Positions 859 to 59,902 of a DNA stretch of 64,000 nucleotides are shown here, in pieces (position 1 is the stretch's first letter; each line of letters begins with the position of its first letter). The notes beneath the pieces were generated by a model. It worked only from the letters and a program-made list of their open reading frames with translations. It was not told the origin of the DNA and searched no databases. Both the position numbers and the translations under genes were made by a program. Origin of the DNA: Trichoplax adhaerens (Eukaryota > Animalia > Placozoa); NCBI RefSeq assembly GCF_000150275.1, contig NW_002060956.1, positions 1 to 64,000 on the forward strand, written 5' to 3'.

Positions 859-2191
859 CTTGACCATTCATAGCGGTCGAATTTAAAATAGTTAATATTA
901 GACACAGAATCTGAAATGAATAAAAAAGTCATCATGAATTTCCCTCATGGAAAAATTGCTACCAATTATAATTATTAATTATGCAGTCTACATACTTAAT
1001 ATTATTAATAGATTTGAAATCGGATAGCATGGATATTAAGGAACTGATTTAAAAACTAATCACAGTAATCAGATTCATGTTAAAGTAAACTAATCGGTTG
1101 GAAATTGTGCAATTTTAAGATAGAGGGAATATTTTACTTCGTTGATCATCGAGTTTTTGTTGGTTAGGATTACGTAAAATTAGTTGAAAAAAGTTAATAT
1201 AATTATTATCGTCAAAGTGTCAATTGTCATTATTTCATCTATGAACATCTATGATTCCATTAAGGCTCTATTTAGATAAAATTTATTTACTATTTTTGCT
1301 ATTTTGCATTCTACTGTAAAATAATGTTTGTCAGCATGTAGATAACAGTAGTTACATCAAAATATCACTAAACGAATAAAAACTGAGAATTATGTAAAGG
1401 CATAACGGCTAAACACACATAACATATAAAACTAAATTCCTTGTCAGACTTCAAAATTAAATATTATTCAATTGGAAAATACTTTTTAATTAGAATACTA
1501 ATTATCAATCTAAGTACTATCACGACAGGTATAAAATCAATATGTATAAAATATTTATATACACGTCATAGATTCTTTGTGTGGAAAATATCCGAATAGA
1601 ACTCAATTTTACAAGTACAGGTTATAGTATTTTTTGATGAAAAGCATCAAAATTTAGGAGTAACTGAAATTGATCCGATTTCCATAGATCAGTCTATATC
1701 TACGATGCATTCTACTTCATTTCCAACATTCTAATGAGTTATCGCCATCAATTGCGACCGAGGATATTATCAGAATTAGCAGCCATTACATATGCGATAA
1801 CTTGCATATGAGTTTAACATATACATACTCGTTTACATATTATACACACTTTCAATAAAAGCGGTCCAAGTTGATGTAAGAGTAAATGAATATTTAAATA
1901 TTATTCTGATTATTTCTGTAGTATATGGTGTAAACTGCTTGATATGAGTTACCGAAAATAACATCCATCAATAATGACCTTGCATAGTAGCATAAACATA
2001 CAGAACAATAATCTATCAACGCGCACACTTTATGACATTGAATTATATCAGAGTGAAAGAAGTAGATAGAAACAAATAATATTATATTAGCATTCGCGAT
2101 CAGTCTATCCTTTCTCAAGCTTTCAAAAAAGATACAATATCATATGAAGCAATATAACTATAATTACCAAAATAATTTTAGCCAGGTCCAT
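859..2191 (-). CDS. 5' end (signal-peptide exons 1-2) of a further CTL-adhesion-GPCR paralog ('gene 0'); remainder lies beyond the left edge
   Basis: Exon 2191-2168 gives MDLAKIIL|gt and exon 910-859 gives ag|ILCLILTILNSTAMNGQ-G|gt. Sequence and phases match gene A exons 1-2 (MDLANIIL / ILCVILTPMKAE), and the upstream flank is also homologous. Confidence 0.8.
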
Positions 2192-2420
2192 CAGCCAGAG
2201 TAGAAATGAAATTGTTACGATAGCAGATGCGTATGTAAAGACAGCAACGATATACACTTATGAGAATAACACATTAACTCACTCACAACTAAATAAAATT
2301 TACAATGTTCTAAAGTAATTAGTGATGTTACTTTTATTTCAATTACTAATTGTTTCTTTCGTATCTGCTGCACCAGTGGTAATGCTATATTGAATTAATA
2401 TTTATCTTAAAATACGGAAA
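2192..2420 (-). promoter_or_regulatory. Conserved 5'UTR/proximal promoter block shared by gene 0 and gene A
   Basis: About 230 bp upstream of the ATG aligns with 22012-22225 (e.g. agaaatgaa.ttgtt, taaagaca..aacgata.acacttat, ttacaatgt, cttttrtttcaatt, caccagt). Confidence 0.55.
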
Positions 2421-4221
2421 TTGACCAAGTCTATGCACAATATATTAAAACACAATAAATGTCTGGAAAATTACATAACATAGCTCTCCAAGAAATGCTA
2501 GTTCATGTCTTTATAGAAGCTGAGAGAACTATTATGAAGGAAATAAATGTTCGTGTTATGCGTTAATGTTATAAACTAAGATTATTATGTAAATTATCAC
2601 CTGCGTCAAAATAATAATTAGAATTTTTATTTTTTAATTGTCTTGATATATTTGATACAATGAAGATAAACAGTAAATATTAACGTATTGTATATTGTTA
2701 CTATTAGTTTTCACAAAAATTACTTTTTCCTCTGTATATTTACTACCTTACTATCAATCTTTCGCATTAACTGATATGCCCTCTGCTGTACGTATTGTAG
2801 ATTTAGATTTTGCGATAGCGCATAATTTTTAATGAAGTAAAATCAAATGTATTTCTCATTGTAAGTCTTTATCTTTTTTGGTGTGTTCTAAAGTACCAGT
2901 ATACACTGCTAGTAAGAATAAATGAACATCTGATGATATGATCCGTTTAGTCTTTATAAGAAGATACTATGCGGTTCTATTTCTCTCTATTAGAAAAGCC
3001 GGTAAGAATAATCTCATTATGCGTTAAACCTATTGCAAAAATGGAAATTATACGTCACAACACCACAAAATAGTAAAGCAGTTGATATCCAACATATTTA
3101 ATGAGCAAAAATTAAGACTAAATTTAGAAACAAATTCGCAACTGATTACAATTTATAGCATCAATTACATCAATTAGAATATAAAGCTAACAATAGTAGA
3201 TGAAAAAAGAAAAGCTGCGATGAACAGTAGAACAATTACAGTTAATCAGATCAAGTTTGAATGTAATCATTACATGGAAACTTTTGCATAACTCAACATA
3301 ATACGGTAGTAATTTCTGTACCCATTATCGATTCAATATTCTAATGACCATTTTAAAGCGAAACAATTTGGTAATCTTACTGGTAAATTCAACTATCTAG
3401 CTTTCCAGTGTGATTTCTGATTCAATACAGTAGGATTCCAGTATTTAAGGTAACAAGTAGATCCAATTTTAGAGGTCATATTACCATTTAATTAACCAAT
3501 TAATCAAGATAACAACATCAAGAACATGGACAGATCATGATAAGCATGTCAATTTTGATCAGTAAAATTCGCTATTCGTTTAATCGACAAAATATTATTT
3601 AATGTTCTGCAGTTCTTTGTGTCTGTTTAATGTTGGTTTGTTTATTGTCTAATATTTCACTAGCGAAGTGATTATTAGTCGTCAGACATAGCGTGAATTG
3701 ATTTTACTACTGAATTAACTTTGATTTAAATTAAATTTATATATAGGTTACTTAACTGATATTCTATAGATAATTATAATCATATGATGTAGACCAACCA
3801 ACAACTAATCATCATTTGACTAGTTTTAACTGATGTAAGCGGATCGTTTTGTGATCTCAGTTACTGTAGGATGGTATAATTTCAGTCTATAATTTATGTG
3901 ATAGAATATATATGATACCATTTTTAAAATAAAAATTGCTTTGTAAATGCTTCCAGTGACCTTACCGTATATATGCGAATTTTAGTCACTGTACAATCCA
4001 TCTTGGTTAATTAATTAACAAAAGATTGATGACATGTGTGCACACAGTCTCACTGTATTTAAATAAGAAACAATGAAAAAATGTGACTAATGAGCCAATA
4101 TAGCATATCAAATGTTCAATTCCGAATATAGATTTATAAACACTGTCTAGATTCTCAATGAGTTGAACTAGCAGAAATGGATATAATTAGCAGTTAGTAA
4201 GAGTACAGGATTATATAGTAC

Positions 4222-4656
4222 TGTCACGGTACGAACTACCGTGAAGAAATAGCTATCTAAATTAGGTTAATATAATATAGCGATATTATATTACAACTAG
4301 TTACTTACAATAGGAATTACTCTAATTATAAATGTGTTACAGTAAATTTATTGCTGTGCTGTAATGTGTACTGAAATGATTCTGTGAATGGACATATTGT
4401 AGTCCGACTGTGAAAAACTAGTTAGTAGATGTTCTCACCCAAGTATTTTCATAAGATGACTTGTGAATGTTAGCTGCTGTAGAAGGGTATATAAACCCGT
4501 CAGATAGTTGAATAAAGCAGTTCTCAATTGTATAGTTGTTTTAACGTAGAATCAAAGGCGTCTAAATTCTTGTAAGTAGGGATACTGAATCCTGGAGACT
4601 ATAGTAATTTAGAGATTTGTTTTACGTTATCCTTGTCACGAAGCTGGTTTGTGACA
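4222..4656 (+). mobile_element. Solo LTR, family R1 (~435 bp)
   Basis: TGTCAC...GTGACA termini, flanked by AGTAC/AGTAC, TATA-like tatataaa ~4488 and AATAAA ~4511. Very similar inverted copies at 44760-45194 and 63303-63738. Confidence 0.85.
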
Positions 4657-4676
4657 AGTACAGGATTATATAATAC

Positions 4677-5304: not shown

Positions 5305-5929
5305 AATACTGTGTAAAACATATCGAATATCAAAACAGTGCAGCGACTATCTACTGCTTTCACGAAATATCTCCTTGAAAACCGCTAACGATTCCATATA
5401 ACTGTTAAATTTGTAGTCCCCACAGAGGATATGGTAATCATCTCACTTCTTGTATGAAGAAAATTTTTGAATAAATTGTCTAAGCGGAAATTGATAATAC
5501 TGTACGTATTTCAAAATATTTCTTAACGCTAATCTACGCTTCAATTTAACTCTAGGGATCATTTGTAACCTATGACATGTGTTATGTCATAGTAGAGATT
5601 TTGACTTTTCTATATATAGATAATTCATGCTTATTACTTATTTGGTTCTAATATATTACCACACCTGAGAATATAATTTTCATCTGTAACAATTTCAATT
5701 AGCATTGCGAAGCAAATGGTTCAATTCTTTATAACTATGTGTATGCCTACTCATACCTCTTGTACCGCAAATAAGCAAGGCCACTACATGTTATAAAATA
5801 CACTTTCTAGCAATAGACAATAGTAATGTAGAAAATAACGTTGAAATTGAAGTTTGCTATTCAGGATTAAAGCCATATAATGGTCCCAAGTTGTTATTAC
5901 GTCTTCAAGTAACATGAAAATAACATTAA

Positions 5930-7645
5930 TTAATGATGATAATATTCACTTCTTTTATGGTTGGCTGACGTAATTGATTAATCGCAAGCCGAAGCTAAGG
6001 TAGAACCACTATTTTGGGGATGAATAAGGTATTTAAAGTAATGATAGGCGTATTTTAAGAAAAATGTTAACAAATCAGTTATAATTATCAGGGTAACGGG
6101 GTAAGTATCAAATAAACGCTGATAGTTTGTAGAAAGCATTATGCAACTAATTCATATAGTCCTAGAAAACTTCAATATATGCTATACAATTGATCTTACG
6201 GTACTAACCAAATGGCTGCTCTAACAAACTCGTTAGATGAATGCAGTTCTGATCAAATGCATTAGTTTGGATTGAGAAAGGAAAAATATGATTTAATAAA
6301 TTATTAGCAAGGGTCGCTCATAAATTATGAATTCACTAAATATTCGAGGTATTTATTGACCAATATTATAAAGCAGTAATTGATGCCACTACAAGGCTAT
6401 CATTTTAAATCATTAATAAACCATTCTCAAGGGAATGAGTATAACTAATTGAGATTATGTGGTATCTTATTTAAATTGATCGGATCTTGTGTAATATCTC
6501 CATTGTCGTACGGCAAATTCTCCAAAGAAGCTAAAATAAGTTGTATTTTAATACTACGAGTTGAATGCACATTTTTATTCTATGAATAAATTTAGAGAAT
6601 GGATAAAGAGTTCAAATTATGTGCATGAAATCTTACGTAAAGTTACTGTATGCTATACATTGATAATAGCTTCTAGATTTAAATTATTTAATATAAAATA
6701 TCAATGATTCAATAGTCAAACAAATAATTAATTACAGATTTGAAACTTTATATAAAGCCAGCTATCTTAGAAACCTATAATACATGGGAATGGCAAATAG
6801 TACTCGTATATCTCTGCTAGGTTCTCCATCAGATTAGTTTTGAAGTATCATTGTACTGAGTTTCAATCTTTCTCGACTGTAACCTTACACCTAAAATCAG
6901 TTAAATTAGATATGATATAAATTAATGTTGCTAACAACCATCTATGTATATTGCTATAGCAGATATCGCACTATGATTATTTAGCACGATTACACTCAGT
7001 ATGTTGCTAAGTTATTAATGAATACTTTTGAAGCTTAATATATTTTTCCGTGTAATAATAATTCTAAAATCAGTCATCGAAAACTCACATCGCGATCTCG
7101 AAAGTAGTGAACGTAAAAAATTAACAAGCTCTTTATATGAAAACAACCCAAAATATTATCATTAGTGTCAACCAAATATTATAGAACCTGATACCCTTCC
7201 TTTTGGATAAGCTAGAAATAAAATTACACTTGATACAGTATCGGAATGAAAATTTGCCAGTGGGTAATTCAATAATGTAAACATATAAGCAAAGGCGATA
7301 TTATCTGTCGTGTGCTATACGATACCAATTAGCCAAGATATACCAAAAAGAAAAATTAATGAAGTAACAGCTCTGATTTCAACTTTGCAAGAGAAGAATA
7401 TACTTTGATTAAATTATATGCTGAATGCTACTATGCTACACGCAAAGTGCTTTAATTGTCGTAATTGCGATAAAAATTGCGAAACTGTTCTAATTTAGTA
7501 CCTATCAATATCATGGATGTCTCGGCAATTGAATTGTAAAAACAATTCTTTACTATACTTGACCTGTTGAATTTCAGATTTTGAGACCACAGCCGTAATA
7601 GAGAAAAAAGAATTTTATAGCAAAAATCGTAACACCAAGGTTACA
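5930..7645 (-). pseudogene. 5'-truncated adhesion-GPCR pseudogene (TM5b to C-tail exons only)
   Basis: Seven exons homologous to gene A exons 19-25. Lesions: +1 frameshift in a T-run ~7614-7619, TAG 7317-7315, TAA 6887-6885, 6836-6834 and 5980-5978, acceptor mutated to CAA ~7385, donor lost ~6462. Intron homology to gene A continues to ~7920 and then stops. Confidence 0.9.
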
Positions 7646-7964
7646 CTAAGAAATTTCTTAGAGAAAGATATTAAAACATTACGAATCGCTAAAGATATTA
7701 TAATAAATTCAAGTTTATTTTTATACTATACTATTAAGTTAGGTATTTAAAAGAATCAATTTTAATACCAATCTGATATTGGTACAGATTAAAGAATCAT
7801 AAACGGTTACGAAAATACATTCTCTATACAAGAATATCTGAGTATTGATATCCTTTATCATAAATAGCGCAGTAATTACTCAAGAGAAGCATTCAATATT
7901 GATTAATTATTAGTTCAACAAAATGGTGCAGTAAAGGGATATTTTAGTTATGATACGTAGATAT

Positions 7965-8355
7965 TGTTGGGATATAGTAATTAATTATATTAGATCTGAC
8001 TATCTATTCAATTCATTAGTCAGGAAATAGAAGTTACCAACGAGTAACTAAACAATAACTAAATCAATAGGGATATCTTACCAACAAGTAACCAGATCAG
8101 TCTTCGCCAACTCTCCTCCTCGTACTTAGCTCTCACAGCCTTAAATACTGTCTCTTTTATGCACTCATATTTAGTACAAGTTACCAAGTTTAGATAATTA
8201 TACTAAATCGGGAGTCATATCTAAATCTTGATATTAAATACTAAAAGCTTGCTTTAAATGAGCAGCTTGTGTTACAACCGTACGCGGTAATTTGCCGTTT
8301 GTATCTCATTAGTTAGTTATCAACTCTTTTAACCCCTTGGCTGCGTAGTCAGGAA
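7965..8355 (+). mobile_element. Possible degenerate LTR with PBS-like motif at the pseudogene breakpoint
   Basis: TGTT start, TATA-like and ATTAAA motifs, then TGGCTGCGTAGTCAGGA (loosely like a tRNA-Ser primer site). No second copy in the window. Confidence 0.3.
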
Positions 8356-9357
8356 GTATGTTTGCATCCATTACAAGGCTATTGGATTCAAACGACGAAC
8401 GACCAAAATATGAAAATTGTATATTTTCAGCTGCATGTCGCCAACTTCTAACGAACAAATATAGATGGTCGTTCAGTTACAGGTTTTGCATAGAAAGGTA
8501 CCACTTAGTCATTGCATTAGCAGTAAACATAATAACATGAACATAACAGAAATCATCAGATTCATCTTACCACAAGAATTAGAAATGATTGGGCCAGCAA
8601 AATGCTATATTAGAGGACTTGCATTCCAATTCAACAACTTTCGCAATCATGGTTGTCATTCATAGCGAGTAACCGAAATAGAAATATATCACATACGCAT
8701 ATTCGTATCTGGAACATACTATTTTGGGTTGCGATATGCATCTATTCCAATATACTCTGATATGGCGTCTACTATAGCTAAGGGTGCTAATTTGAAAAGC
8801 GTTTGAAAGCCCAATTGAATATGTTGCATAAAGAATGGATTAAAATCGACAAAAAATTTGACAAGGTTAACAATAATTGCTTAATCTTAAAGGTTGTATT
8901 ATTATTTCTTAATATAAACTTGAATGCAAATAACCATAATCTACTAGTTGTTGCTATTACGTTGCTATTAGAACCACTGTTGACTGAAAACTGGATAGTA
9001 AAGGCTGCCTATATATACTGAGACTCAAAAAAAGACCGAGTTTGTAGAAGCAAAAAAATGATCTATTAGCTACCGTTGTTCATTTACTGACTCTATAACT
9101 ACTATGAATCAATAAACAAGTCAATAATGACTGATTAATTATCAGCAAGAGAACTGTTACCATTGCTTATGAGCGCACTTGCTGTCAAAGTAATACATAA
9201 TAATTTTGTAGTTACTCCTGCTACTTGTAGCATTAGCGAGATTATAACTAACTTAAAATAGCTGTTGACGTTAGTATAGGAGATCCTATATTAGGAGAGA
9301 TATCCAATCTGTTAGTAGAAGCTCCTGCTGAATGAATTAGGAAACTATAGTTACTTG

Positions 9358-9690: not shown

Positions 9691-9769
9691 TTAAACTTTA
9701 TTACAACAGTCAATCTGCATGATATGACGAGCGCAAGCCGAAGCCAAGGCGGCAATGCTAGCACATTCG
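9691..9769 (-). CDS. Duplicated (candidate alternative) terminal exon of gene A
   Basis: CAG acceptor, phase 2, open: (S)ECASIAALASACARHIMQIDCCNKV*. Paralogous to the proximal terminal exon (ISVATLASTCDH...). Confidence 0.5.
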
Positions 9770-9892
9770 CTGACAGTATTGAATAATACACACGGGAATA
9801 ATTTAAAAGTTAAATTTTTCTATCTAAAATAACAATTTTTTAGGACCAAATTTCAATATATTGCATAATATCTTCAAAAATGAAAATACTAT

Positions 9893-12800
9893 TCAAGGAT
9901 CAACAGGAATTGTATTTTCAGTTAATCGGTATGGTCCATGATCGCAAGTCGAAGCCAAGGTGGCAACACTAATCCTAAAATGATTAGGTAATCATCAGTA
10001 TTGTTAGATACATACTTCAGAAAATTCTCAATGTTATTTATAACTCGTAACAATCGAAACTTAAAATGAATGTCATAACTTAACGCAATTATTCTGCAGC
10101 CAAAAAATCAAAAAAAATGGCATAGCTACTTAAACTAACCTCTTTGATAGATATGTTCCTGATCAAGGTAATGATTCAAACAATAGAATTAAAAAATATA
10201 ATTTGATGAGTTAATTAAAACGAACACTTACAAATCCTGAAGTTACTAAATATTTCACAAGTGTTTATCAGCAATAATTCTACAGCATTCAGTAACAATT
10301 GCTACGCTCTTACTATTTTAAGCCTTTCATAACTACTGCATACCTAAACGAATGAATAGAGCTAAATCAGATTACCTGTTATTTTATTAAGACTAATCGG
10401 ATCTTGTGGAATAACTTCGCAGTCTTGAGATCCATTCTCTGAAGAAACTGGAAGTAAAGGTATTTTGATAACACGCCTATAACGCGTGTTTTCATCCTAT
10501 TTTAAAAGATTGCAAAAAAATGAATAGCATGAAATCTTACATACTACGAAAGCTTACGTGAGATTATACTACTTTTGGATGCTGACTTTATTTTAAAGTA
10601 AATTAATCAAGATTAATCAATGCAAAATATTTCAGCATCTAAATTTTATTATATAATTAAAATTATGTCTTAACCAGCTATCTTAAGATATTTTACGAGA
10701 ATAGCCATTTGTACCCGCGTATCTCTACTAGCTTCGCCCATAGATCGGGTTGGAAAAATCGAATTGACGAAATTAAACCTTGTCCGAATATAATCTTGCA
10801 TCTGAAATCAATAGAATTAATTCCGTAACCTAATAGCTTTAGCTATCATCAATTCACTGCTATAATAAGCACTCCTACTTATCCGCCACTACTTAGTAAT
10901 CTAGTTATAGTCGCAAAATAATGTATTAAAAGTTATTAATTCCATAGCTGAATCTAGGTATACAGTATGTACAATAATAACTAAAATTAATCTTTAAAAC
11001 TTACATTATGATCTCGAAAGCAATGGAAGTAAAAGATTAACAACCCCTTCGTACAAAAGTAAGTCAAGATACTATCATTAGTGTCAAATTAATCTTTACC
11101 GTACCACACCAAATTGTCTTCTTCAAGGATAGAAGAGCTAGTAGCTAAATTAGAATTGATTTATTTCTCAAGAAACATGATCACTTACCTGTGGGCAATT
11201 TAAAATCGTGAATAAGTAAGCAAATACGGTTTCACTGGTTGCATAGTACAAGATCCCAAACAGCCAAGAAATACCAAAGAGGAAGATTAACGAAGCCACT
11301 GCTTTTATTCCAACTCTACAAGTGAAGGATAGGAGTATTTTGATTAAAATCATCATATTAGTTGTTAGCTCACTAAACTATTAGTAAAATACTTTAATTG
11401 CAGTAAATAAAGCAACAATCATAGAATACAGTAAGAGATTTATTCCTCGTATATCTACTCTAAATTATAATTACAACTGCTTAATTCAGCACTATAACAG
11501 CATTGTAGATATCTAGCAATTGAATCAAGGAATAATTCTTTGCTGTACTTGAACTTTTGCATTTCAGATTTTCGGACCATAGCCTTGATTGAGAAAAGCG
11601 ATTTGATTGCCAAAGTCATAATGACAACGTTACACTAACAAAAGTTTCGTTAAGAAAGTAAAATTAAAACTCTGCTTAGCGAACAGAATATTACAATAAA
11701 CCCAAGTTAGCATCTTGCAATGGTAATATTAAATGGGGCAACTACAAAATATCAATCCATTCACAATTCTAGTGTTTTGCGTAGATTAAGAAATCAAAAC
11801 TATAGCCAAAGTAACATTATTCGTACAAGAATGATTGATCAGCGATACTCATTATCATACACAGTGAATAAAGCATTCAAGAGAGGCAGTGAATATTAAT
11901 CATCAAGCTAGACAAAGAATAGTTCTTCGACATTTCAATCATCTTATATAATAAGTGTTTAATATCTCACCATCATAATTAATATAACTGGACCAACAAA
12001 AAACCACATTTGAGCGCTTGTATTTCTAATCCAGCAACTATCACAATAAATGTTATTATGTCCAAATTAATCGAACCAAACTGCATAATCTGCGGTATCT
12101 GATATTGGTATTTGAAACTTACTAATTTGGATTACGATATGCATCTATCCCCGTAGATGCAGATATGCCAACAATTATGGCAGGCAACACTAGTTTAAAA
12201 GCCATTGGATAGAATATGGAAAGATAATATATATATATATAGAATAAGTAACATGAGCATTTGGAACAGTGAATGATACTTATTTGATAGCTAAGAGGGG
12301 ACAACTTCTAAAATAACTGTCTGTCAATGTTATGACCACACCTTAGTTAGTAAAAATATCCAAAAGCTAGAATATTGACTATTAATACTTAAACGATAGT
12401 AGTTGCGAACTCTTAAAAGAAAATGATGCAATTGAGTTCTAAGCACTTACTCCATCCTAAAACAAAGTATATTCGTCGAATTCCTAGGTCCACATTTTTT
12501 CGTATCTTAGAAATTTTTCGAAAAATAAGCAAAGATTCCATCATCATCCACGTTAAGCTAGCCAAATAGAGAAAGTGTAATCCAATGGCAATGATAGTAC
12601 ATAGAATCTAAAAGAATACGAAAAATTATTATTTTATTCGTAATGATAGCAGCTTTGACGAATTAAATTGATCAGCTTTTGACTACTTAAGATAATAAAT
12701 ATAACTTAATAAACGTCTAGAAGAGGTCATATTATTTGCATGGGTTATAGATTACCATAGCAAATATCTTTTAAATTCATTATAATAAATAGCTTTATCT

Positions 12801-24846: not shown

Positions 24847-24925
24847 TTAGTGATGACCAATAGCATCCTTTTTACGATTGGTTGACAAGACTAGATGATC
24901 ACATGCCGAAATCGAAATTGTAACA
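24847..24925 (-). CDS. Duplicated (candidate alternative) terminal exon of gene B
   Basis: TAG acceptor, phase 2, 79 nt, open: (S)VTISISACDHLVLSTNRKKDAIGHH*, compared with the proximal (S)VSTSILACDHFVLSTDRKTDAVSHH*. Confidence 0.55.
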
Positions 24926-44759: not shown

Positions 44760-45194
44760 TGTCACAAACCAGCTTCGTAACAAGGATAACTTAAAACAAA
44801 TCTCTAAATTACTATAGTCTCCGGGATTCAGTATCCCTACTCACAAGAATTTAGACGCCTTAGATTCTACATTAAACTCAACTAGACAATTGATAGCTAC
44901 TTTATTCAACTATCTAACGGGCTTATATACCCTTCTACACCAGCTAACATTCACGAGTCATATTATAAAATACTTAGGTGAGAACATCTACTAACTAATT
45001 TTTCACAGTCGGACTACAATATGTCCTTTTACAGAATCATTTCAGTGCACATTACAGCACAGCATTAAATTTACTGTAACACATCTATAATTAGAGTAAT
45101 TCCTATTGTAAGTAACTAGTTGTAATATATTATCACTATATTATATTAACCAAATTAAGATAGCCATTTCTTTACGGTAGTTCGTACACTGACA
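44760..45194 (-). mobile_element. Solo LTR, family R1
   Basis: TGTCAC...CTGACA termini, AGGTC/AGGTC TSD. Inverted copy of 4222-4656. Confidence 0.9.
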
Positions 45195-46846
45195 AGGTCA
45201 TAAAATCGAAACTGTCCAATATTAGTGAAAGAGTACCGGTACTGAAATTATAATATATATAATTAAAAACACAATTTCATATTATTATTTAAGTGCCGGT
45301 AGTACATCATATTGAAAGAAAGCTAATCACCGATTAAATCGAGGACTTGCATTGCTTAAGATATCACGAAATGGAAAATGTGTGGTAATAATATGACAAC
45401 AGCAAATGTAATCGCCATTAATGAAACATTTTCATTACCAGTATTTACTGTACTTATAAACATTGTTTCACTTATCTATTAAATATTCTATTACAGAACC
45501 AATGATTTATGGCTATAGAAACCAAAGTGAATAAAATTAAGTAGCAGTCTTTCCAACCTAAATACCCATAATACATTCAATTTACGGGTATAGTTGATAT
45601 AATGAGATTTTAAGATTAGCCTATCTAATATCTAACCGGCACTTTTTAAACTTTAAATATGTCTAGTATACAGCATAAAGTCTAAGCAACGCCGATGACA
45701 ATTTAACTGCGTAAACATGCCTAACCTTCCCTCTTAGATTAAATGCCGATTAATTCATAGCTTTAATATATTCATTTCGCACTATTAACAGTCATTAGGG
45801 TTGACAGTGCCCTTTCTAAAGCACCTATTCAAAATACTGAATAACTCATCGTACATTATCGGAAGTCCGATAGCTAAAATTTTGACTTTTTTATTTGCAT
45901 GCACTGCATAAGATACAATATTGTATCTTAACCTACTGAAGTTCAACTCTTAATTAAGACAGCTGACAGATAAAATCTTTTCCTTTACGGTATTTAGAAT
46001 TGAAATAATCGCTAAGAAATTACAGAGAATCGATCATATTTTGATAACAATTTCATCACATCACATGGAATTTCAGAGTGGCATAACGAAGGCATTAAAT
46101 ACTGTCTTGCATAACTGAGCAACTGAATGAAGCAATTTATAAGATATATGGCTACTTGGTATTGCATACTATGATACTTTATGAGCAATATAGATTTAAG
46201 CCCTGCAGGTGTTAGCCCTCTGGTACAATTGATTATAGAGCTTATAATAATTATAAACCACTATTTTCTAGGAATGATATTAGTTTAACATAATACATTA
46301 AGATTATATCTACGAGATCATCGATAATTTTAACAACAAACATTACACAGAGCAATTGACGTAGAAAATTGTTTGTGTGTTATGATCATCTATTTTTAAT
46401 TTTAAATAGCATACTAAGCGTTACAAATTTTATCAATACAATAAAATCTAGAAGAAGAAAATTGCTATAAATAATATTCTATATTCTATAATATGACTTA
46501 GTACATCAAATAATAAACCTTATAAATTGCATGAGTATTAAGGAGCATATAGGAAAAAATTACTGTAGTGCAGTAGACAATATCGTATGGACTCTGGCTT
46601 TACAATTGATTGATAATAACATGGTAGTTGACTAAATCTCGCAGCATTAATAAATAGAATTAGTATGGACACAGACTGCTGCATCCTAATAGGCTATGTT
46701 TCGTAGCTTATATATTCTATTTGCCAATACTATGAAAGATAATTATTGCGAGTGAAATTTCTTTTCTATAATTTACATCTCAGAAGACAGTATTAATTGC
46801 ATATTGTAGTGTAAAATAGCTTCAAAGGTCATTCCAATATGCCTAA

Positions 46847-49800: not shown

Positions 49801-52800
49801 TTTGCGTACGGAAGAAATTTTGTGCAAAAGTAGTATGGCTTCCATCATCATCCACATTAAACTAGCCAAGTAGAAGAAATGCAACGTAATCGCAATGATG
49901 GTGCAAGTAACCTATTATTAAAAGAAAGTCACAATTATTTCATTATAGCCAATTCCAAGAATTCCAAGAAATCCAAGTGATGCTCTTGTAATAAATGTCA
50001 TCTTATACGTTGAACATATCTAGAAATAATAGTAATGCTGATCATTTGCACGCATAATATTATTTAATCATTAAGAGATCTTAAACTTATCATGATCAAT
50101 CTTTAGCAAGCTTGGTCTTTAAGTATCAGTAATACGTACTTAGAGAACAGATAGAGGCCGTGCATCCAAATTATCATAAATTTTATCACTCGTATTCTAA
50201 TATCTTATAATATCTTAAAATTTTTTTACAAGGCATTATTTTATTTATCAGCTTTCTATTAATGAGCAATTACCGGCAGGCTAGCTGCATTCATACCAGC
50301 TAAGAATCCACTAATACATATCAACATAGCAATAGCCAAATTCAGATGAATAAAGTTCTTTACCGTATGTAATTTCCTAGAATCAATTTTAAGAGAACTG
50401 TTCTGATTAAAAATTTATAGATAAATTAATTAATATAATACCCGTGCCGTTGTTACGGTACTGTCTTCCCGATTAAGTGATTATTGAATAGTGAATAATG
50501 AATACCTTAGAATAGTCTAGGTAAGGTCATATGTTATAATATTTAATTTTGCTAGCCTTGTACTATTTAATTCTTTACTATAGTAGNNNNNNNNNNNNNN
50601 NNNNNNNNNNNNNNNNNNNNNNNNNNNNNNNNNNNNNNNNNNNNNNNNNNNNNNNNNNNNNNNNNNNNNNNNNNNNNNNNNNNNNNNNNTATAGCTTGGA
50701 TTGTGATTGTAAGACTGTACGAGAGTAGTAGTACTCGTACGTTAGATTGTATGATTTTGAAGATATCTATTTGTAGAAGAGGTTTACATACGTATTGTCT
50801 TGATACTTTTGAGATGTTCATATTAAGATTTCGTGATAATAATAGATAACGCTAATTAAGGTAATACCGTGAGAGTTGCATTGTGGTGCTTTAATTAGAC
50901 GCGTGAATAATGAATAGCTCGCGCGATGATAAACTGTTATCTTGTGACTTAATTGGCTAGATATAATTGTAATGCGTAAAATTCATTCTGTAACAAAGGG
51001 TATATAAACCGCTAGCTTGCGCTATAAATATAGTCCAGAGGTAGTTCTATTGGAGCTAGTTAGTACTTGGTAGTTGTAAGGCTAACCTAATCTTATGTAA
51101 TAAAGTGAAGTTTACAAGAAACTGTAGTTCTTTTGTGTTTTTGAGAAGACACTTAATCACAAACGCGAAGAAAAGTGTTACACTTAATCAGTTGTCTGTG
51201 GAGTACCGCCGAGAAATCGAGTTCCCATATATCGCTGGCATAGAGACTGAAAAACTCTGGGATAGTAGTCCGATTTATTATACTTGCACTAGAGTTCTTG
51301 ACAAAAATCTTAGCTACAAGTAAGAGTTGCGACAGTAGTAAATGCTTTAGTTTTTCTCTAACTGTGTAATCACTTTCGTTTTATTTGCTATAATATAGTA
51401 GTCAACTATTATGGTAAAATACCAGGTAACTAACGTAACAATTCTATCCATTAATGGATTTTTTGCTTACTATTGCTTCACGACCGTTATCGCGCAGTGA
51501 TTTTTGCTTACTAATGCTTTTCTTATTTTCATCAGATAACAAATTTTGGTCTTTGTTGAGAACATCGCTATGAATGAAATCATATATTCTTATGTAAATA
51601 AATGCATAGTTAAATAATATTATCCAAGTAGTGATAATTAATATTTATGTAGGTTTACTGCAAATTGACTGATTTTTCGATGAAGTTAGAGTTCAGTTTT
51701 GCCCAAGAGAGACTAGTAATGCTACTGTTCGTCCCCATCAGGATTTAGTGTCGTACCGTAGGTAGATGTTATGACCATCTTTATTAGACTATAAAACGCT
51801 CTATTTACGGATTATACCTGTGTCTCGAACTAGTAGCTATAATATATTTGCTTAGAGGGCCTTGTCTTTAAAAATTGAGAATCAGAAGTTCAGTAATCAC
51901 GCTGCTATATATGTATCGCTCTTATTCCTACGACTGTTGACAGATTCCAAATAGGAGTCCCTAACTTCTCTTCAACATCTTAAGCAATTCAGTAACAAGA
52001 TATTCTGGACTAACAAGTTATAATCGTGAGCAGATAGTTTATGTAATAGTTCGTGTCAATATCAAACCTGGCACTGCAAAAGTTCATTACATAATTTTTA
52101 GCTATCGTACTCTTTACAAACCTGCTGCTAATCAATATCATTATCATCATCAATAAGGCGAATAGTGAAATAGAGTAGCCAATATAAGTGATATAGCGGA
52201 GGTAGGTATCGTGAGGCCCAATCAGCCCCTATAATCAAAACACGATCAATGATTTCATAGCACAACATTAAATCCGGACATATAATATCGTGATATGTTG
52301 TGTCATTATGTCTTCTAAAGTGTGTTGTTCGAAGAATGTCACTCAAAGAAAATACGCAATATGAAAGATTTAATACATAAAATTTATCTCGCTCTTAAGT
52401 TCCTTCATTAAAATGCAATTTACACGTAACTAGTATGCGAAGGCTTATTGAATCTCAACTTCTAGGATAATCCATAATCTACAGCTAGGTTTAATTCATG
52501 CAAAAGGCAAATGCCTTGATAAATCGATGTATTTCTATATTCTCATTAAACTGTTTGTATTTTACGAATATATTTATATCTGGTATCAATAAATATTTCT
52601 GATTTACCTTGGAGCCTTGCATAAGGACAGCGAAACTCGTAAAATGATTGGTTATGCAATGTACCGTGCTAGAATTATAACCTATCAAATCTGTTCCATA
52701 CTGCGACCATTGCCTGTAAACATGTTTTTAATTTAATAAAGTTTAATCAATACGATTAATATGAAAAATCAAGATCTTCACATTAAGAATTCCTTATTCT

Positions 52801-55800
52801 AATCTCAAGTGAAAGAGGAATAAATGTTAGGTTATCTATTTTAATAAACAGGTAAGTTAGATTGATGTTTGTTACAAAATACACTCAGGTATTATTAACA
52901 TAATATCGAAGTTAGATAGACAAATTATCTTACGTATTCTCCCAATATACACATCGATAGGGTGGATGAGGCTAATAGTAAAACGGTCATTACAGTACTT
53001 AGTTAGATTTAATCAATTTAAAAAATCAACAAATCGGTATGAATCAATTTAACTAACCTTTCGAGATCCTATTTTAAGATAAAAATGAACGGGTAAAGTA
53101 AAGTTTTTGTCTTGGAGTGGATACATTGAGCAAGACAAGATACTAGAAATTATAACGCTGAATGAAACATTTAAAGTATTGCTTAATATGAGACATATTG
53201 AATACTGCTAGCAAAGTTGAAGGAATAAAATTTAAAAGTAGTCACTTTGCATTATGTATGTTACTGACCGTAACATTTGCACAAAATATAATAAATCTAG
53301 AGGTACCTGCTACTATTTTCGTTAGTATTAGTTTTGGTCCAACTTTCTTGGATATTATACGATCGTACTACCACAGTGACAGTATCAGCTAAAAAATATA
53401 ATAAAATTACTAACAAATAACGATATCAAATAATGTAGAGTAATGAAATTGTATAGATATAATTTATTCGCCTATAGATTCACAATGCTTTCGCATCAAT
53501 TAAAATTATGCTTCAAAATTAGCTAGCACATTATCAGAAAAAGGTAATTAACCTATAACATTACTTTTATATCTTATTTAACGAAGCTTTGCGAATATAT
53601 GATTATGAATACATCATATATCACTGAAAATATTCGATACCTTGGCTAGAAAACCGAAATACTGATCTGGGAATTCTCACTTCTGCTACTGGCTCATTGG
53701 ATAGTGACAACGCTAGATTGATGATTGGTGTTTCATCCGATGCGGAGATTTTATAAGCAATTAGTTCTAGCACATAATATGCGATGCAAATAGCATTAGG
53801 ATATATGACAGGATGAAAAGTCAGTAGTGGATGAGTTAATGTAGTTTCTCTTTCCGTAAATTATTATAAAAGTGTAGATTCGAAGTTAAAACTGTGGTAA
53901 AGTTTCGATAAGTAGTGTAGACAAGGACTTAATTATCTGAGTTTGTAATGAATTGATAGAGATATAACTATCTCTAATAGAAATAGAAGTACACATTGCA
54001 TTGCATTGGTGAAATAGTATGTTGTGATAAAACATTATTTCCAAGAGCTCTCTTTCACACTAAATCATACGACTGAAATACTACTGTATGATAAACCTAT
54101 GAATAGTTAAGTAAGATTTTTATTGCCTCAACTGGACTGAGCCAAAGCTATAAAAGCCGCCTATTTGGTGCAATTTTTATTCCCTTATCCTTCATTACCT
54201 GATTGAAGGTTCTGATAAATGTAAAATTATTTACGTAGCTCTTCTATAAGTACGAGTAATCATAACTTTTGTGTAGTATTTAAGTAAATCTGTAGTCTGT
54301 ATTCAGACTGCAGTTTCCTTTCCAATCTGGAGAAAGTTGAGATAAAGTAGTCTTGGTTTAAAGCACAGTTCTACGTGGTAGTGAATGGAGCATATCGTTG
54401 CAATAATCTATCTAAAACTTACGAAAATTAGGCACAATTTCGTACATTTTTAGTAACTTATTATAATCATCAATATCAAGTAAATGATTAAACAATTTCG
54501 ATTTAGTCGAAAATTATAGCGATATGCTAACTCGTCAATGACAAGTGATTATGCAACACTTATTTTAATGAACATAATAATAAAGACTAATTATAAAGAA
54601 AACAAATCACTATTAATAATTTATGGAAATAAAATGGTATAAATTCGAAATCGTAGCATGAATGAAAAGATCAATTTTACGTTATTTACAGTAAATGAAA
54701 TAAACACCTGAATTTGGTGTCAACAAAGTTAGTCGTGTCGTGATGTTGGCTTCATTAATTTGTCTTGCTAAAACCGCATCATTGTGATCGATTTGCTTTA
54801 GAACAGAACCAAGACTCTTTAATAAGACAAAAAATTAATCTCGATCAAGCATTTAATATCTATAATCTTTTACAAAATAGTCAAGACATACAAGATATCA
54901 TTATATTATCTCATTTGTAAGCCAATTAATCTTTTGAGCAATAAATTAGACTGCATCGTTTTAAAGTATGAAATTTTTCTCCCTAAAGTCCTAAACTATA
55001 TCAAGACTTGACTAACCTTATTGACGCCATTAGCGATATTTGCAATAAACTGGTCGTTGGCCAGTTGTATCTCCTTTACCTATAAGATAAAGATAAAGAT
55101 TTAACATCTCAATTTATATTGTAAGATCGAGAAACCTTTATTAGCTTATACTAACGAATTCGTCATTATGGATACAATTGTTACATCCTTACAAGAGGAT
55201 TTACACCTTAAGCCCATAATAGTACAGTACTAATCAATAGCATGTCTGAATTTAATCACAAATGCCTTATTAATAAATTTAAATAGCTATGAGTTATTAA
55301 CCTAGCACAAGAGTTAATTATTAGCTTTAAAAACAATAAGCTGAGCGTCCTATCTAAGAAAGTAACATTCAAAAACCATAGAGATACCATTTCTTGCAGA
55401 TAGCATACCATATTACTTTTAAAATTAAAAGCAGAATATTTAATATGCTATCCCTGCTATTAACCTTATCATTTGTCATGAAATCAGACGCAATAGAGTT
55501 TCCATTATTCAATGAAGGAGACGGATTGAGTGTAGGGCTTGCGGTAACTGACGTAAAAGACAATATTTATAATATAAATAAGAATCGTAAAGTGACAGGG
55601 TCTTTATAAAATTTATAGTTATGCTTTCGATCAGCGTAATATATAACTCGTACGATATTTCGTTGGAACAATACATTCTGTAAATATGAACTTATTAGTT
55701 TATATTTCATTAGAAAAATTAATAAATCCATTAAATTAGTTCTGCAAGATTACTAGTTATTTTACGGTACGATAGATCTTTCTGTCATATTATACTTGTA

Positions 55801-58800
55801 ATGAAGCGTCTTCTCAATAAATTTAACAAGAACCACAGTTTCTAATAAACTTCTTCTTATTATATAAGATTAGGTTCGTCCTACAACTACCGAGGACTAT
55901 CTCACTGCAATCAGAATATCTCTGGACTATCTGAATTATTGCAGCAATATTCACGATTTATATACAATTAGTTACACCGTGATTTTTCTTCATATACAAT
56001 CATGTCATACCAATTTAATTACAAGATCATATCTAAGTTTACTATCGCGCTATCAATTCATCATTCGCGATTATAATTAAAGCGTCTCAATACAAATCTC
56101 ACAGTACTAACAAAATAAGTGCAATCTACTATATTATTATTTCAGAATCTTAATATAAGCATCCCAAAACAATTATTACAGTTCGTACTGCAAATATTAT
56201 CCACAATTAGACACTTATGTAATCTTGTAATCTAGCGTATTTATCTATTTTCTTGTTATCCTATAATCTTAATCTTGAACTTATTTAAGGCTGCACTGCA
56301 ATACTATATAATTACAAAAGAGTCACTAGAATATTCTAATTACTGTATTACTGTTATTGGAAAGGCGTCCAATAATAGAATGAGTACATAGGTATATCGC
56401 TAGAGGACAGCAGACTTTATATTACGTCTAATGATACCTGAAGAAAACCTGCTAGAATATACTGACGGCTGCATCGCTGGTGATAAAAGAGTATCTGAAT
56501 AATAAAGCAAGTCTACAGATGTACGGCTGGGAAAATATCCGTAAACATCACTGGTTTTCCTGTACTCTACGTGAATGAAGAAGTATGCATTAGCCACTAT
56601 TGCAAAATAAAATAATATCAAAGTTTTACTCGAGTTGTCAAATTTACAGCAACAAGTTATCTTCTATATTAGCTACATATAACGTCGTAAAATTAGTTCA
56701 TGATGATCATACTTCATTAAAAGTGCATTCTTATTAAATATGATACAAAATTTAAATACTGAATCACACATACCGCTTACTGGCAATATAGATGGATTTT
56801 CTTGCTTAATTAAAGTAAGATTATGACTGGAACTAGTGGACCGAAGTGACTGTTCATCATTGAAGTTATAAAAGTGGATGCCTCAATATAAGTTGTATTA
56901 GTTGCGGAAATAAAACTTGGGATGGCATATACTATTAAATTGGATGATGACCGCTGATGATGGTTTGTAACTTTTTCTACATCCGATATACTTGTACTAG
57001 CAATGGAGATAGGACCTAGTTACAAGGAATTTGATCATAAATCATGAACAAAACTTGAAACAACGCCTAGAATAAATGAGTATACGGCTAATTCTACCAA
57101 CAACTATTGCAGCTAATAGATTTTAGTGATACCTGAGTAAATGTGTGATTCGTTAGGAGTCGACGCCGTTAATTCCGCCTGGTTTGTCATATTTAGTGTT
57201 AAAATATCAGAATTATCATTATTTGTAATAGTGCAAGATGATTCTAAAATACCCTCAGACTGCGTCGAACTAAATATAAAATCCAAACTACTACCAGATG
57301 TTAACAACTGTGATTTACTCATCGGTATGGCTATAATATTATTGACAAAACTAGCTGATGAAGAGGATGATATAAATGAATTCTCATATGTATTTGAATT
57401 GATGCTTGCGTTTGAAACACCCATCTCATTGATCGCAGTGGTTGTTGCCGTCGAAATGGTAGCGTCATAAGATAAAGTTGATATCGCTACTGAAGGATGT
57501 AACTCGCTTGAGGAATCATCGGAGCTTACTGAATAAGAAGACACTACGCCAATCGGCCTTTGACAAATGTATCTACAAGCATCGCTGCAGTTATTATTAA
57601 TCCAGTCAAACTTATTTGATGGCAAACTTCTAGCAGAAACGCATCTATCACTCGTCCGCTTTGGATAACCCTTCAACCAAAACTGTTCACCATTGATTAC
57701 ACTTTCATTGGTTGCCAACCAATGATAATCCTCGATCTGGTTGTTTCCTGCTATGTCACTTAGTCCAATCCAGTAACGTCCTGTAAATTGTAGTATTCCC
57801 TTTAGGTTATCATGAATTGCAGTGGTATCGTCGACTGCTAAATCGCCGCTAGGAAATTGCTGACAAGCGATTCGAGCATCTTCGAACGATTCAACGTCCG
57901 AGAAAGATTTAAAGCATCGATTACTTATTTCCGTCCATCCATCAGCACATTCCTCTGTTTAATCAAGAATTAACTCTTTAGCTAAAATTTTCTCATATAC
58001 TGTAGTCCTGCATTAAAATAAGTGATATATTAAAGATCCGGACAAAGTAGTTGGAAAGTATAAGCTTGTAGTACTAATAAATTGCTTTTTCAACGTTGAA
58101 CTTCTTAATATCCAATTAAATTTTACAGCAGCAAATATGGGTATAGCTAGAGCATTATACATTTCTTTCGAAATTATCAACTTCCTTCTGTAGATATGCG
58201 AAATAATTACAGTTCAGTCTTGCAGGTAAAACTGAGGTAGACGCAAATGCATTAATATCCTACACAATTAGATATTTAACTGAAACAGCCGTACTGGAAT
58301 TGTTTGATACCCTTCCTACTATATTTTTTTTTTTAAGTTTTAAAACTGCGATAATAACAAAAAGGTCATAAATATGATCTTGGATTTTATCATCATTACT
58401 TCAAACTTGCTTTTGAATATCATCTATATTGCAGAAATATTTTAGGCGTAACGACATACGGCCATAAACACCTGAAGATGTTTAAGTAAATTCCTCTTTT
58501 TAATCTAATTCGATGCTAAAGCGTTGCTTGCTACCAACATTAGTATCGTCACAGTTAAAATTATGACAAAATGTAAAATTTTCAAATATCTTTTCCAATT
58601 AATAAGCATTTTCTGAGAAAATTTTTCCTTTCATTCAATATTTAAATTCCATAATATAATGGTTTTTGTTAAAATCATTGTTATCGTTGATTAAATTCAT
58701 TAATTTACTACCGATTAGTCACGAACTCGTTACTTCCAGCAAATAGACAAATTATTTTACGATTAAACTAATCACGTTCTTAGGCAGCAAATCTATCAGT

Positions 58801-59902
58801 TATTTCTATATTCAATCCAAGGCATAAATTATTTATATTATTTATCGTTCAATATTTTAACAAACCTTGAGCAATGACGACGCGTAATGCTATACAAAGG
58901 ATCTAAAAATAGATTAAATAAAGATTTTAATTCCTATAATAAAAGAGAAACTACTATCAATCATTACTAATTTCATCTTATAATTTCAGGTCATTGTTGT
59001 ATCCGTTATAATTATTTCTTTGTGCATTCATGGAATAACAGAGATGAATACTGTAAAAATGATATTATGCTACTGCCATTACAGTTTTAGTTAAGATAAA
59101 TTAGCTTACTTAAAGAACTTGGCAAAAATTAAAATTTTACTAAAAATTTACTTGAAAGTCTACACGAAAATTGTATATTACTATGATTAGTATTATCAGA
59201 TTTAAATCAAAACTACCTAATCGATTAGAAAAAAGCATAGGTTTATACAGAATGTAATATATTTAAGACTACATAAAATTGAGATAATAGTATAGAAGGT
59301 TGCTAGCTGTCATTTATGACATTTTCACTCCTTTGTATATGATCTCATGAACGTTCTTGTCAGATAAAAATTATGAGTAATTTGTAGTCTAATATTTCTT
59401 CTTTGGTATACTGTAAGGTAGTACACGATAACAATTGACAGTAAATACAAAGACAGAAATACAAACTATGAGAAACAAAAATCCAAGGCAGAAAACTGAA
59501 TCAAAGTCGTATCAGTCTCGAAGTTAAATTGCATTTAATTGGATATAATGGAAACCTGCTAGCGAAAAATAATGTTTCCCTTGAACGTTGAACTAAAGCC
59601 CCTGAACTACAAAATCGCTCTTAGGGATGACCATAACATAGAGACTAGGCAGAAGCATTAAAGTTCACAAGCTACAATTATGCGCGTTATAAATGCATAT
59701 AATTGAAGAGCAGGGACAGGTGTACCCATTGGGTAAAAAATTATATCAAAATAGAATTGAGAAGTACAGTAAGCAGACATGAATACAGTTATATTCTAAC
59801 CATATACCGGTATGCAGTAGCAGGCATTCTTGTTGTAAAATTTAAATGAAATACAGACATTAATATAGTATTCTACCATATGCTTACCAAAATGATATCC
59901 AT
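46847..59902 (-). CDS. Adhesion GPCR 'gene C', same architecture, shorter stalk (~935 aa if the 57015-56774 segment is skipped)
   Basis: Exons: 59902-59888 (MDIIL), 58902-58866, 57954-57133, [57015-56774 frame-disrupted], 56596-56438, 55547-55465, 55079-55017, 54816-54708, 53766-53641, 53388-53307, 53157-53058, 52971-52934, 52713-52608, 52228-52122, 50376-50274, 49911-49755, 49526-49460, 49377-49311, 49075-48990, 48300-48174, 48041-48000, 47764-47678, 47467-47347, 47134-47107, 46925-46847. GPS CVYW..WSQYG..HCITNHF|TSFAVLM; ends DAVSHL*. Confidence 0.88.
48450..48947 (+). mobile_element. Solo-LTR-like insertion in a gene C intron
   Basis: TGTTAA...TTAACA termini, TATAAAT ~48696, AATAAA ~48851. 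The intron is ~0.5 kb longer than in A and B. TSD weak. Confidence 0.55.
50587..50689. other. Assembly gap (N run) in a gene C intron
   Basis: 103 Ns. Confidence 1.
50690..51333 (+). mobile_element. LTR, family R5, abutting the gap
   Basis: gggtatataaacc TATA, AATAAA ~51099, GCGACA end. Related inverted sequence at 23539 and ~55950-56300. Confidence 0.65.
55950..56303 (-). mobile_element. Diverged R5 LTR copy
   Basis: Patchy colinear similarity to the reverse complement of ~50690-51010 (atcgcgc, taattaaagc, tctcac.gta.ta, aatcttaatat). Confidence 0.5.

Follow-up and report, generated by a model that had tools for sequence, protein, structure and literature searches.

Receptors that join a CTLD (C-type lectin-like domain) to a seven-transmembrane domain (7TM) have been described from placozoans. 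In Trichoplax sp. H2, 28 of 36 CTLD receptors have seven helices and are Secretin/Adhesion G-protein-coupled receptors (GPCRs) (Kamm et al., 2019, PMC6321704). There the combination of CTLD and GPCR is called unique, pattern recognition, GPCR signalling and arrestin-mediated endocytosis are proposed, the proteins are put forward as candidate scavenger receptors, and a matching expansion of alpha-arrestins in placozoans is reported. Of these CTLD-GPCRs, one or two are expressed by the metacells of a particular peptidergic secretory cell type in all four placozoan species studied by Mayorova et al. (PMC11452194). Here we describe the first 64,000 nucleotides of Trichoplax adhaerens (H1) scaffold C1401 (C1401:1-64000, about 30% GC and AT-rich; hereafter the window). 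The locus as a whole is very probably best explained as part of a tandem array of about 150 kb that belongs to the family catalogued by Kamm et al. (2019). Two of the loci are the same: Dataset S3A of that paper ('CTLD with 7tm_2') lists TrispH2_011070 and TrispH2_011071, the H2 orthologs of the genes called H and A below, and a truncated model of the E ortholog, TrispH2_011671, stands in its 'single TM' list. A preliminary description, made from the letters of the window alone, proposed a candidate diversified recognition system; the system is not an undescribed one, since both the family and a proposed recognition role are in Kamm et al. (2019, BMC Genomics 20:5). Neither the family nor the idea of its function is thus new, and the array anatomy is an incremental addition; new are the array map, the turnover of stalk exons and the fast evolution of the stalk between strains. 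The word 'tandem' is absent from the text of Kamm et al., and its sections 7 and 8, with the passages reached by term searches, contain no stalk, GPS/Stachel, missing sugar site, pseudogenes or selection. The array, the stalks and their evolution are undescribed in those parts and in Mayorova et al., and full-text search returned no paper naming the locus tags.

The stalked adhesion GPCRs (aGPCRs) ADGRE (CD97/EMR), ADGRL4 and ADGRD1 have, like the placozoan receptors, an N-terminal binding module, a Ser/Thr-rich stalk, a compact GAIN domain, a GPS with a TxFAxLM tethered agonist, and a 7tm_2 domain. The best structural matches of the GAIN domain include ADGRE1 and ADGRL4, and ADGRD1, ADGRL3 and ADGRE5 are the best solved-structure matches. 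The placozoan head is a CTLD whereas theirs are EGF or pentraxin modules, identity over the 7TM is about 30%, and no orthology is implied. Unlike the vertebrate stalked aGPCRs, the placozoan GPS has HF↓T (arrow, cleavage site) and one disulfide. CD93, thrombomodulin, endosialin and DEC-205 also carry a CTLD without the EPN/WND Ca2+ site on a Ser/Thr-rich stalk, but they have a single transmembrane helix whereas the placozoan receptors end in GAIN and 7TM, and the likeness is by domain type alone (E about 1e-7). Like chemoreceptor and innate immune clusters, which are lineage-specific tandem arrays evolving by birth-and-death, the locus has tandem copies in one orientation, with a pseudogene and a domain relic among them, and receptors whose ectodomain varies while the signalling part is conserved; it differs in being small (seven genes), without domain-wide positive selection, with evidence of gene conversion and with a stable order between H1 and H2.

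Paralogous units (three full, one partial) were found by DNA and translated self-comparison of the window. A purpose-written spliced protein-to-genome aligner, which returned the RNA-supported model of copy A exactly, was then used to place the 17 core exons, which run from the GAIN helix to the third exon of the tail, in copies B and C and in four further copies. Database proteins TRIADDRAFT_60117 and TRIADDRAFT_60118 map to the window at 95-100%; together with TRIADDRAFT_59938 they lie on contigs of 1,898,518 and 1,942,820 bp. The window contains the intact paralogs A, B and C, the decayed 3' pseudogene D and one signal-peptide exon, with every receptor gene on the minus strand (Table 1). 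Beyond the window C1401 carries three more intact copies in the same orientation, E at 72.8-83.5 kb, F at 91.4-101 kb and G at 109.9-119.2 kb. A further intact copy, H (TRIADDRAFT_59938), is found where scaffold C1403 ends, giving a stalked CTLD subfamily of seven intact members (A, B, C, E, F, G and H). Genome-wide (105.6-Mb assembly) there are 89 CTLD exons, and several clusters also have 7tm_2 exons. The preliminary description had counted five co-oriented copies in the window; three stand as intact and D as dead, and the fifth is no independent gene but the signal exon of H. Its shared exon phases were found again, extending over all 17 core exons of A, B, C and the four outside copies. 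These exons measure 63, 109, 126, 82/85, 100, 38, 106, 107, 103, 157, 67, 67, 86, 127, 42, 87 and 121 nt and contain no stop codons in any of the seven. Lengths deviate by at most ±3 nt in one exon of B, C, E and F; G deviates in three GAIN/GPS exons and H in two. Likewise upheld was a conserved 7TM beside divergent lectin, stalk and tail: outside the recent C-E pair, which is more alike in every region, the copies share 61-72% of their amino acids over the 7TM, 39-62% over GAIN and 37-54% over the tail, and the stalks range from 211 to about 590 aa. A 58-kb H2 contig has the order B (3' part)-A-D-H, followed by an Arf/Ras-like GTPase gene, and B-A-D-H is common to H1 and H2; H is therefore the last array member, and the two H1 scaffolds probably lie end to end. 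Between C and E, at C1401:66449-67085, there is a lectin-only relic, and the 8 kb downstream of it have no 7TM exons. The H2 protein RDD36264.1 (P0006, 'C-type lectin domain family 10 member A', 210 aa), whose number adjoins that of the E ortholog RDD36265.1, may be a counterpart of the relic; it has no match to the relic stretch, and the two H2 proteins are on different contigs.

Copy A reads as one open frame of 1166 aa with GT-AG introns throughout, from a signal-peptide exon at 20880-20916 to a stop at 9893, and all 24 exon lengths are identical in the H2 ortholog. A putative first exon is at 21444-21476. Contigs of four public runs were aligned to 13850-19849 (copy A exon 2 to TM1). Three of these runs, each from a different study and one of them recorded as RNA, contain spliced contigs. 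Their joints cover 12 copy A exons, and the skipped stretches are all GT..AG on the gene strand. A single 1748-nt contig unites TM1, GPS, five GAIN exons, four stalk exons and exon 2, and 260 extra letters at its 3' side equal the lengths of the TM2 and TM3 exons (103 + 157). RNA thus links the CTLD-bearing exon 2 to TM1, and spliced transcripts, whose absence had been named beforehand as counting against the locus, are present for copy A with joints in three studies. The other copy A junctions were fixed by frame, GT-AG sites and paralog gene models. The deposited models of A, B and H (P0001, P0003, P0005, P0152) each omit several 7TM or GPS exons.

Pfam was run on individual exons of the window copies, and whole-protein searches were made with database proteins. 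The 7tm_2 pieces of the copy A exons are collinear with the profile (positions 2-30, 27-62, 75-126, 145-171 and 204-246), and the full 7TM of paralog H matches at 6.7e-43. The solved structures nearest in the 7TM, compared using the H2 ortholog of a paralog of A with the alignment running through the GPS, are ADGRD1 (1.4e-41) and ADGRL3 (1.9e-39), then ADGRL2 and ADGRE5, with secretin-type hormone receptors behind. The Pfam GPS profile matches the copy A exon at 9.3e-5, above the curated cut-off, and also P0001 and P0003. The GPS lies directly before TM1 and reads, as the consensus of seven copies, C.YWE...W..YG...NST..(H/R)C.T.HF↓T(S/N)FA(I/V)(L/I)M, with a motif of the type HC.T.HF↓T(S/N)FA(I/V)(L/I)M in 7/7 copies. 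The residues at -2 (His) and +1 (Thr) are retained, all copies have Phe instead of Leu at -1, and the second Cys pair is gone on both sides, which leaves one of two disulfides. The predicted tethered agonist (Stachel) is TSFAILM, TNFAVLM, TSFAVLM or TSFAVIM in the seven copies and aligns with TNFAILM of ADGRD1. The Pfam GAIN profile had no match in this short GAIN-like domain of about 210-220 aa. The fold was seen in the ESM Atlas model of the A ortholog, of which residues 560-785 match the GAIN regions of ten adhesion-GPCR clusters (TM score 0.74-0.80 by query, alignment span 206-220 residues), among them predicted models of ADGRE1, ADGRL2/4, LAT-1, ADGRG2 and ADGRF5. Of the profile checks that had been suggested, Lectin_C, GPS and 7tm_2 gave matches on single exons and GAIN did not. 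Adhesion-GPCR identity, as first proposed, is supported by the 7tm_2 and GPS matches, by the GAIN-like fold and by the conservation of the tethered-agonist sequence. Judged from these comparisons, the GPS reads HF↓TSFA(I/V)(L/I)M and the 7TM is most like those of ADGRD1 and latrophilins. Each intact gene encodes a signal peptide, a CTLD tip, a Ser/Thr stalk of 200-600 residues, a compact GAIN domain, a class-B 7TM and a divergent tail. The cytoplasmic tails share a conserved K-I-P-L-L-P-like block.

The head matches the Lectin_C profile above cut-off on single exons (A 8.6e-9, B 2.8e-12, C 8.4e-10), and the CTLD fold signature, WIGL with a conserved Cys framework, is visible. In C-type lectins the EPN/QPD, Glu and WND residues form the Ca2+/sugar site. 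On alignment with canonical CTLDs carrying EPN or QPD ... E-D-C ... WND, the six alignable placozoan CTLDs read YPA/YPM/YPK/YPK/CPS/NPV at the EPN/QPD position, lack the following Glu, and read WRD/WRD/WIN/WRN/WCD/WRN at the WND position. None of the Ca2+-site-2/sugar-binding residues (EPN/QPD, Glu, WND) was found in these six aligned copies. The domain is by its sequence a CTLD, and the label 'lectin' given at the outset is doubtful, six of six alignable domains being without the EPN/QPD and WND residues. The best solved-structure match is DEC-205 CTLD2 (E about 1e-7). The copies diverge mostly in the long-loop and beta4 region of the domain, which is the ligand surface in other CTLDs.

Stalk lengths are 211 (C), 459 (A), 494 (B), 561 (E) and about 589 aa (H). 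Over these 211-589 aa, Ser and Thr make up 33-38% and Pro just 2-4%, and the only tandem repeat in the whole window is one of 78 nt x2 in B. The 'mucin' of the preliminary description is accordingly a fair nickname for a Ser/Thr-rich region but no finding, given the low Pro and the near absence of repeats. Every stalk exon starts in phase 1, and every one except the last ends in that phase too, so that such exons are readily gained or lost. In the stalk, the orthologs of A in H1 and H2 differ by 23 nonsynonymous changes in 1045 sites (pN 0.022) and 4 synonymous ones. CTLD, GAIN, 7TM and tail together have 5 nonsynonymous changes in 1628 sites (~0.003), and intron divergence is 0.0116. On these 27 stalk changes, the data are suggestive of a stalk that changes at or above the neutral rate while the remainder is constrained.

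dN/dS (omega) was estimated by the Nei-Gojobori method for six paralog pairs. Omega was 0.26-0.45 for the CTLD, 0.17-0.31 for GAIN, 0.14-0.23 for the 7TM and 0.40-0.65 for the tail, values that indicate purifying selection on all four. The six pairs gave no sign of positive selection over the CTLD as a whole (0.26-0.45), and one nonsynonymous change separates the CTLD of A from that of its H2 ortholog. A tree of the core sequences is star-like except for (C,E), with F weakly joining them. C and E form a recent pair, with identity of 96% in the 7TM, 86% in GAIN and 76% in the tail. Between the two, dS amounts to 0.46 for the CTLD, 0.30 for GAIN and 0.52 for TM1, against 0.04-0.05 over TM2-TM7, and nucleotide identity including introns is about 91% over TM2-TM7 against 75-84% in other aligned blocks. 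The TM2-TM7 tract looks like the product of gene conversion. As reconstructed from the copies, the array history comprises old tandem duplications and a recent one giving C and E, loss or gain of phase-1/phase-1 stalk exons, truncation and decay, as in D and the lectin-only relic, and probable local 7TM gene conversion. The label 'birth-and-death' fits the C/E duplicate as a birth and, as deaths, pseudogene D, the relic and the stalk exon that has decayed in C, but does not cover the C/E gene-conversion-like tract. Contigs L012, L013 and L014 (environmental metagenome/Logan) contain CTLD-plus-stalk exons that are 40-50% identical to every copy alike. Other placozoan lineages are the probable source of these exons, which give a hint of lineage-specific turnover.

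The stalks of B, C and E were rebuilt from database models, open reading frame maps and splice sites; micro-exons suggested there by alignment of the A protein were rejected as spurious. In B, an in-frame stop of the stalk sits in a 72-nt intron with good sites (CAA/GTAAGT...AACAG/C, slashes at the exon borders). A second short stalk intron of 79 nt comes next, and copy A has an RNA-verified intron of 79 nt. The donor of the B TM6/7 exon, CAG/GCAAGT, is usual for working GC-AG introns, and the H2 ortholog has the same letters; it could be the reason why this exon is lost from the deposited B model. That model also contains intron read-through. The terminal exons of B have weak aligner placements only, at 24.0-24.9 kb (region about 24.0-26.2 kb). 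Downstream of B there is an internal duplication that includes tail-exon-like sequence. In C, exon 2 is short (822 nt), and the chain 57954-57133 / 56566-56438 / 55547-55465 / 55079-... is phase-consistent with GT-AG sites. Between its exons, two reading frames at 57019-56676 match successive parts of the 732-nt stalk exon of E (open reading frame map; comparison with P0002, the E ortholog). Copy C is probably intact, with a stalk of 211 aa; its terminal exons have weak aligner placements only, at 46.9-47.1 kb (region about 46.8-47.1 kb). An assembly gap lies inside a C-specific insertion of about 900 bp. Paralog E, aligned to either side of it, has just 9 nt between the two blocks and no exon there, and the C TM1 and TM2 exons flanking the gap join in frame. 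From the comparison with E the gap, across which sequence is not readable, is expected to be free of exons. Inverted transposable-element-like copies (71%) lie in two introns of C, one adjoining the gap.

Pseudogene D has at least four in-frame stops, in at least four exon remnants, and conserved cysteines are replaced. Its nearest relative is gene H. It is present at the same place in H2 with 96.3% identity, against 98-99.5% in most neighbouring blocks. The signal-peptide exon at the window start gives exactly the H2 form (TrispH2_011070) of the H signal peptide, and the remainder of gene H (TRIADDRAFT_59938/TrispH2_011070) is on C1403. A fifth independent gene at this place was considered and rejected: the exon is that of H, and the start of C1401 copies the end of C1403. 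C1401:1-4224 is a 94% copy of the C1403 end, directly upstream of the lectin exon of TRIADDRAFT_59938, and H2 has the region once. Window positions 1-4224 (and 5305-5710) are 91-94% identical to C1403:1937389-1942000. The copy said to leave the window is most likely the 5' end of H on an unmerged haplotype, and C1401 and C1403 probably adjoin, with ends that are unmerged haplotypes. The overlap may alternatively be a real duplication in H1.

Part of intron 4 of copy A is taken up by a highly repeated element, over which contig depth exceeds that of the bins around it by hundreds of times in four of four runs; Pfam gave no match for it. Three copies of an element of about 436 bp were also found, at 92-96% identity, of which the one at 4222-4657 interrupts the haplotype-like overlap with C1403 and is therefore a recent insertion. 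The 10-kb spacer between B and C contains a retrotransposon RNase H fragment (RT_RNaseH 1.9e-8), beyond which the intergenic open reading frames of the window yielded nothing.

Table 1. Coordinates in the window (position 1 is the first nucleotide of C1401).
Feature	Position	Strand	Remarks
H, signal-peptide exon	859-910	-	52 nt, phase 0 to 1, AG...GT flanks; encodes ILCLILTILNSTAMNGQ
Copy D	6451-8784	-	truncated pseudogene; remnants of TM4, TM5a, TM5b, TM6/7 and three tail exons
Copy A	9893-20916	-	TRIADDRAFT_60117; H2 ortholog TrispH2_011071; 24 exons
Copy A, exon 2	18350-19774	-	CTLD 19380-19772, then ~1 kb Ser/Thr-rich stalk; one open exon
Copy A, GPS exon	14126-14231	-	HCITVHF↓TSFAILMQ; cleavage-site motif and predicted tethered agonist
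Copy A, 7TM	11189-13967	-	seven exons; 7tm_2 pieces collinear with profile
Copy A, 7TM exons	13861-13967, 12963-13065, 12451-12607, 12123-12189, 11971-12037, 11549-11634, 11189-11315	-	
Copy A, exons joined by contigs	13861-13967 (TM1), 14126-14231 (GPS), 14384-14421, 14501-14600, 14725-14806, 15043-15168, 15494-15602, 15822-15884, 16164-16246, 17604-17645, 17950-18174, 18350 onward (CTLD exon)	-	
Copy B	26460-37374	-	TRIADDRAFT_60118; lower end about 26460
Copy B, 5' exons	37348-37374 (first), 36663-36699 (signal), 34067-35293 (CTLD and stalk)	-	
Copy B, stalk exons	33563-33994, 33343-33483, 33091-33173	-	then 17 core exons down to 26460
Copy B, TM6/7 exon	27260-27386	-	GC-AG donor
Duplication downstream of B	24606-25073, 25683-26146; also 9691-10158		78%
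Copy C	47347-58902	-	lower end about 47347; signal exon 58866-58902
Copy C, exons	57133-57954 (CTLD and stalk), 56438-56566 and 55465-55547 (stalk)	-	then 17 core exons to 47347
Decayed stalk exon	56676-57019	-	in intron of C; frameshifted; homologous to 732-nt stalk exon of E
Assembly gap (N run)	50587-50689		intron of C, between TM1 exon 52122-52228 and TM2 exon 50274-50376
Inverted copies in C	50738-51162, 55796-56239		
Highly repeated element	16483-17034		intron 4 of A; inverted 95% copy 40325-40876
Weaker copies of the same	35854-36312, 39177-39379		
~436-bp element	4222-4657, 44760-45195, 63302-63738		
RNase H fragment	42716-42871	+	

The mechanism proposed for these receptors follows established adhesion-GPCR biology. 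The stalk would keep the CTLD far above the membrane. The CTLD would bind its ligand through a non-canonical surface, which is proposed because the Ca2+/sugar site is missing. Binding of, or traction on, the N-terminal fragment would uncover the tethered agonist TSFAILM, and the agonist would switch on the shared 7TM and G-protein signalling, possibly with arrestin. Several points weigh against this account of an array of working receptors. We know of no ligand, cleavage, G-protein coupling or cell type for these particular genes. With Phe at -1 and one disulfide lost, autoproteolysis may be weak or absent. O-glycosylation of the stalk is an assumption, with Pro at 2-4%. Copy B requires a GC-AG intron after TM7, the model of copy C must skip the decayed stalk exon, and the models of both rest on open frames, splice sites and selection, RNA covering copy A from exon 2 to TM1. 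Paralog dS is 0.7-2.2, near saturation, in all pairs but C-E, and the omegas are rough.

It could be argued that most copies are decaying duplicates, with one or two working and the others young pseudogenes that are still open. D and the lectin-only relic do show decay, B has a non-GT donor and C has lost a stalk exon. Seven copies nevertheless keep a core of about 1.6 kb open over 17 exons, with conserved splice sites at a dS near 1; omega is well below 1 everywhere, and the GC donor of B has the functional consensus and is common to H2. This explanation is extremely improbable. Retention of the copies because their CTLDs recognise different microbial or food surfaces, with loops under positive selection, is the diversified recognition that the preliminary description favoured and, in part, the role that Kamm et al. 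(PMC6321704) propose in their account of the family. It would fit the concentration of CTLD divergence in the long-loop and beta4 region, a CTLD omega about twice that of the 7TM, and the 89 CTLD exons of the genome, many of them clustered with 7tm_2 exons. Yet omega is below 1 in every domain, that of the CTLD (0.26-0.45 domain-wide) never rising above it, and the H1 and H2 orthologs of A differ by a single nonsynonymous CTLD change. The canonical glycan-binding residues are absent, the stalked subfamily has seven members only, gene order is identical in H1 and H2, and there is no known expression response to microbes. Diversified recognition is therefore not borne out by these data, and we regard it as distinctly unlikely.

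The receptors could instead be scavenger or endocytic receptors in which uptake through arrestin-mediated internalisation is primary and G-protein signalling secondary (Kamm et al., 2019). The expansion of placozoan alpha-arrestins in that account (PMC6321704) agrees with such a function, and the K-I-P-L-L-P-like block of the tail could serve as a sorting signal. The conserved tethered agonist and the constrained 7TM (omega 0.14-0.23) argue that signalling is under selection, and the tail is the least constrained of the ordered parts (omega 0.4-0.65), so that a primary role in uptake seems unlikely to us. Self-adhesion or mechanosensing is possible, though on balance we doubt it; the ligand of the CTLD would then be a protein of the placozoan matrix or cell surface, and the array would serve to tune tissue mechanics or cell-type-specific contacts instead of sensing foreign surfaces. 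CTLDs that do not bind sugar commonly bind proteins, DEC-205 CTLD2 is the best solved match of the head, and the architecture is like that of stalked aGPCRs such as ADGRE5/CD97. The expression of CTLD-GPCRs in one peptidergic secretory cell type of four placozoan species (PMC11452194) also points this way. Against it, no partner is known, and the metagenome relatives are not 1:1 (40-50% to every copy), which suggests a lineage-specific turnover less typical of core tissue-adhesion genes. The tandem array of CTLD-bearing aGPCRs carrying a predicted tethered agonist is the reading retained here.

A further idea, to which we attach little probability, is that the stalk is the active, fast-tuned variable, in length and glycan coat, of a placozoan-specific sensor that feeds a constant tethered-agonist switch. 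It is based on amino-acid change in the stalk at about 2x the intron rate between the very close lineages H1 and H2, with the other domains almost unchanged, on shifts of whole phase-1 exons, from 211 to about 590 aa, and on a CTLD that has lost the sugar site. If true, the stalk might reach through or evade various biofilms or symbionts. The practical gain from the locus consists of corrected full-length exon models, a scaffold join, a caution that classical sugar binding by the CTLD is improbable, evidence for 7TM gene conversion and a stalk that seems to change faster than introns. These are useful for cloning and de-orphanising the receptors and leave the picture of the field unchanged. 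Placozoans lack nerves and a gut and are built of a few cell types, but their GPCRs number in the hundreds. The fusion of a CTLD to an aGPCR is almost unique to placozoans by the published account (Kamm et al., 2019), which makes these receptors good candidates for sensing food, microbes or self, an idea already in print.

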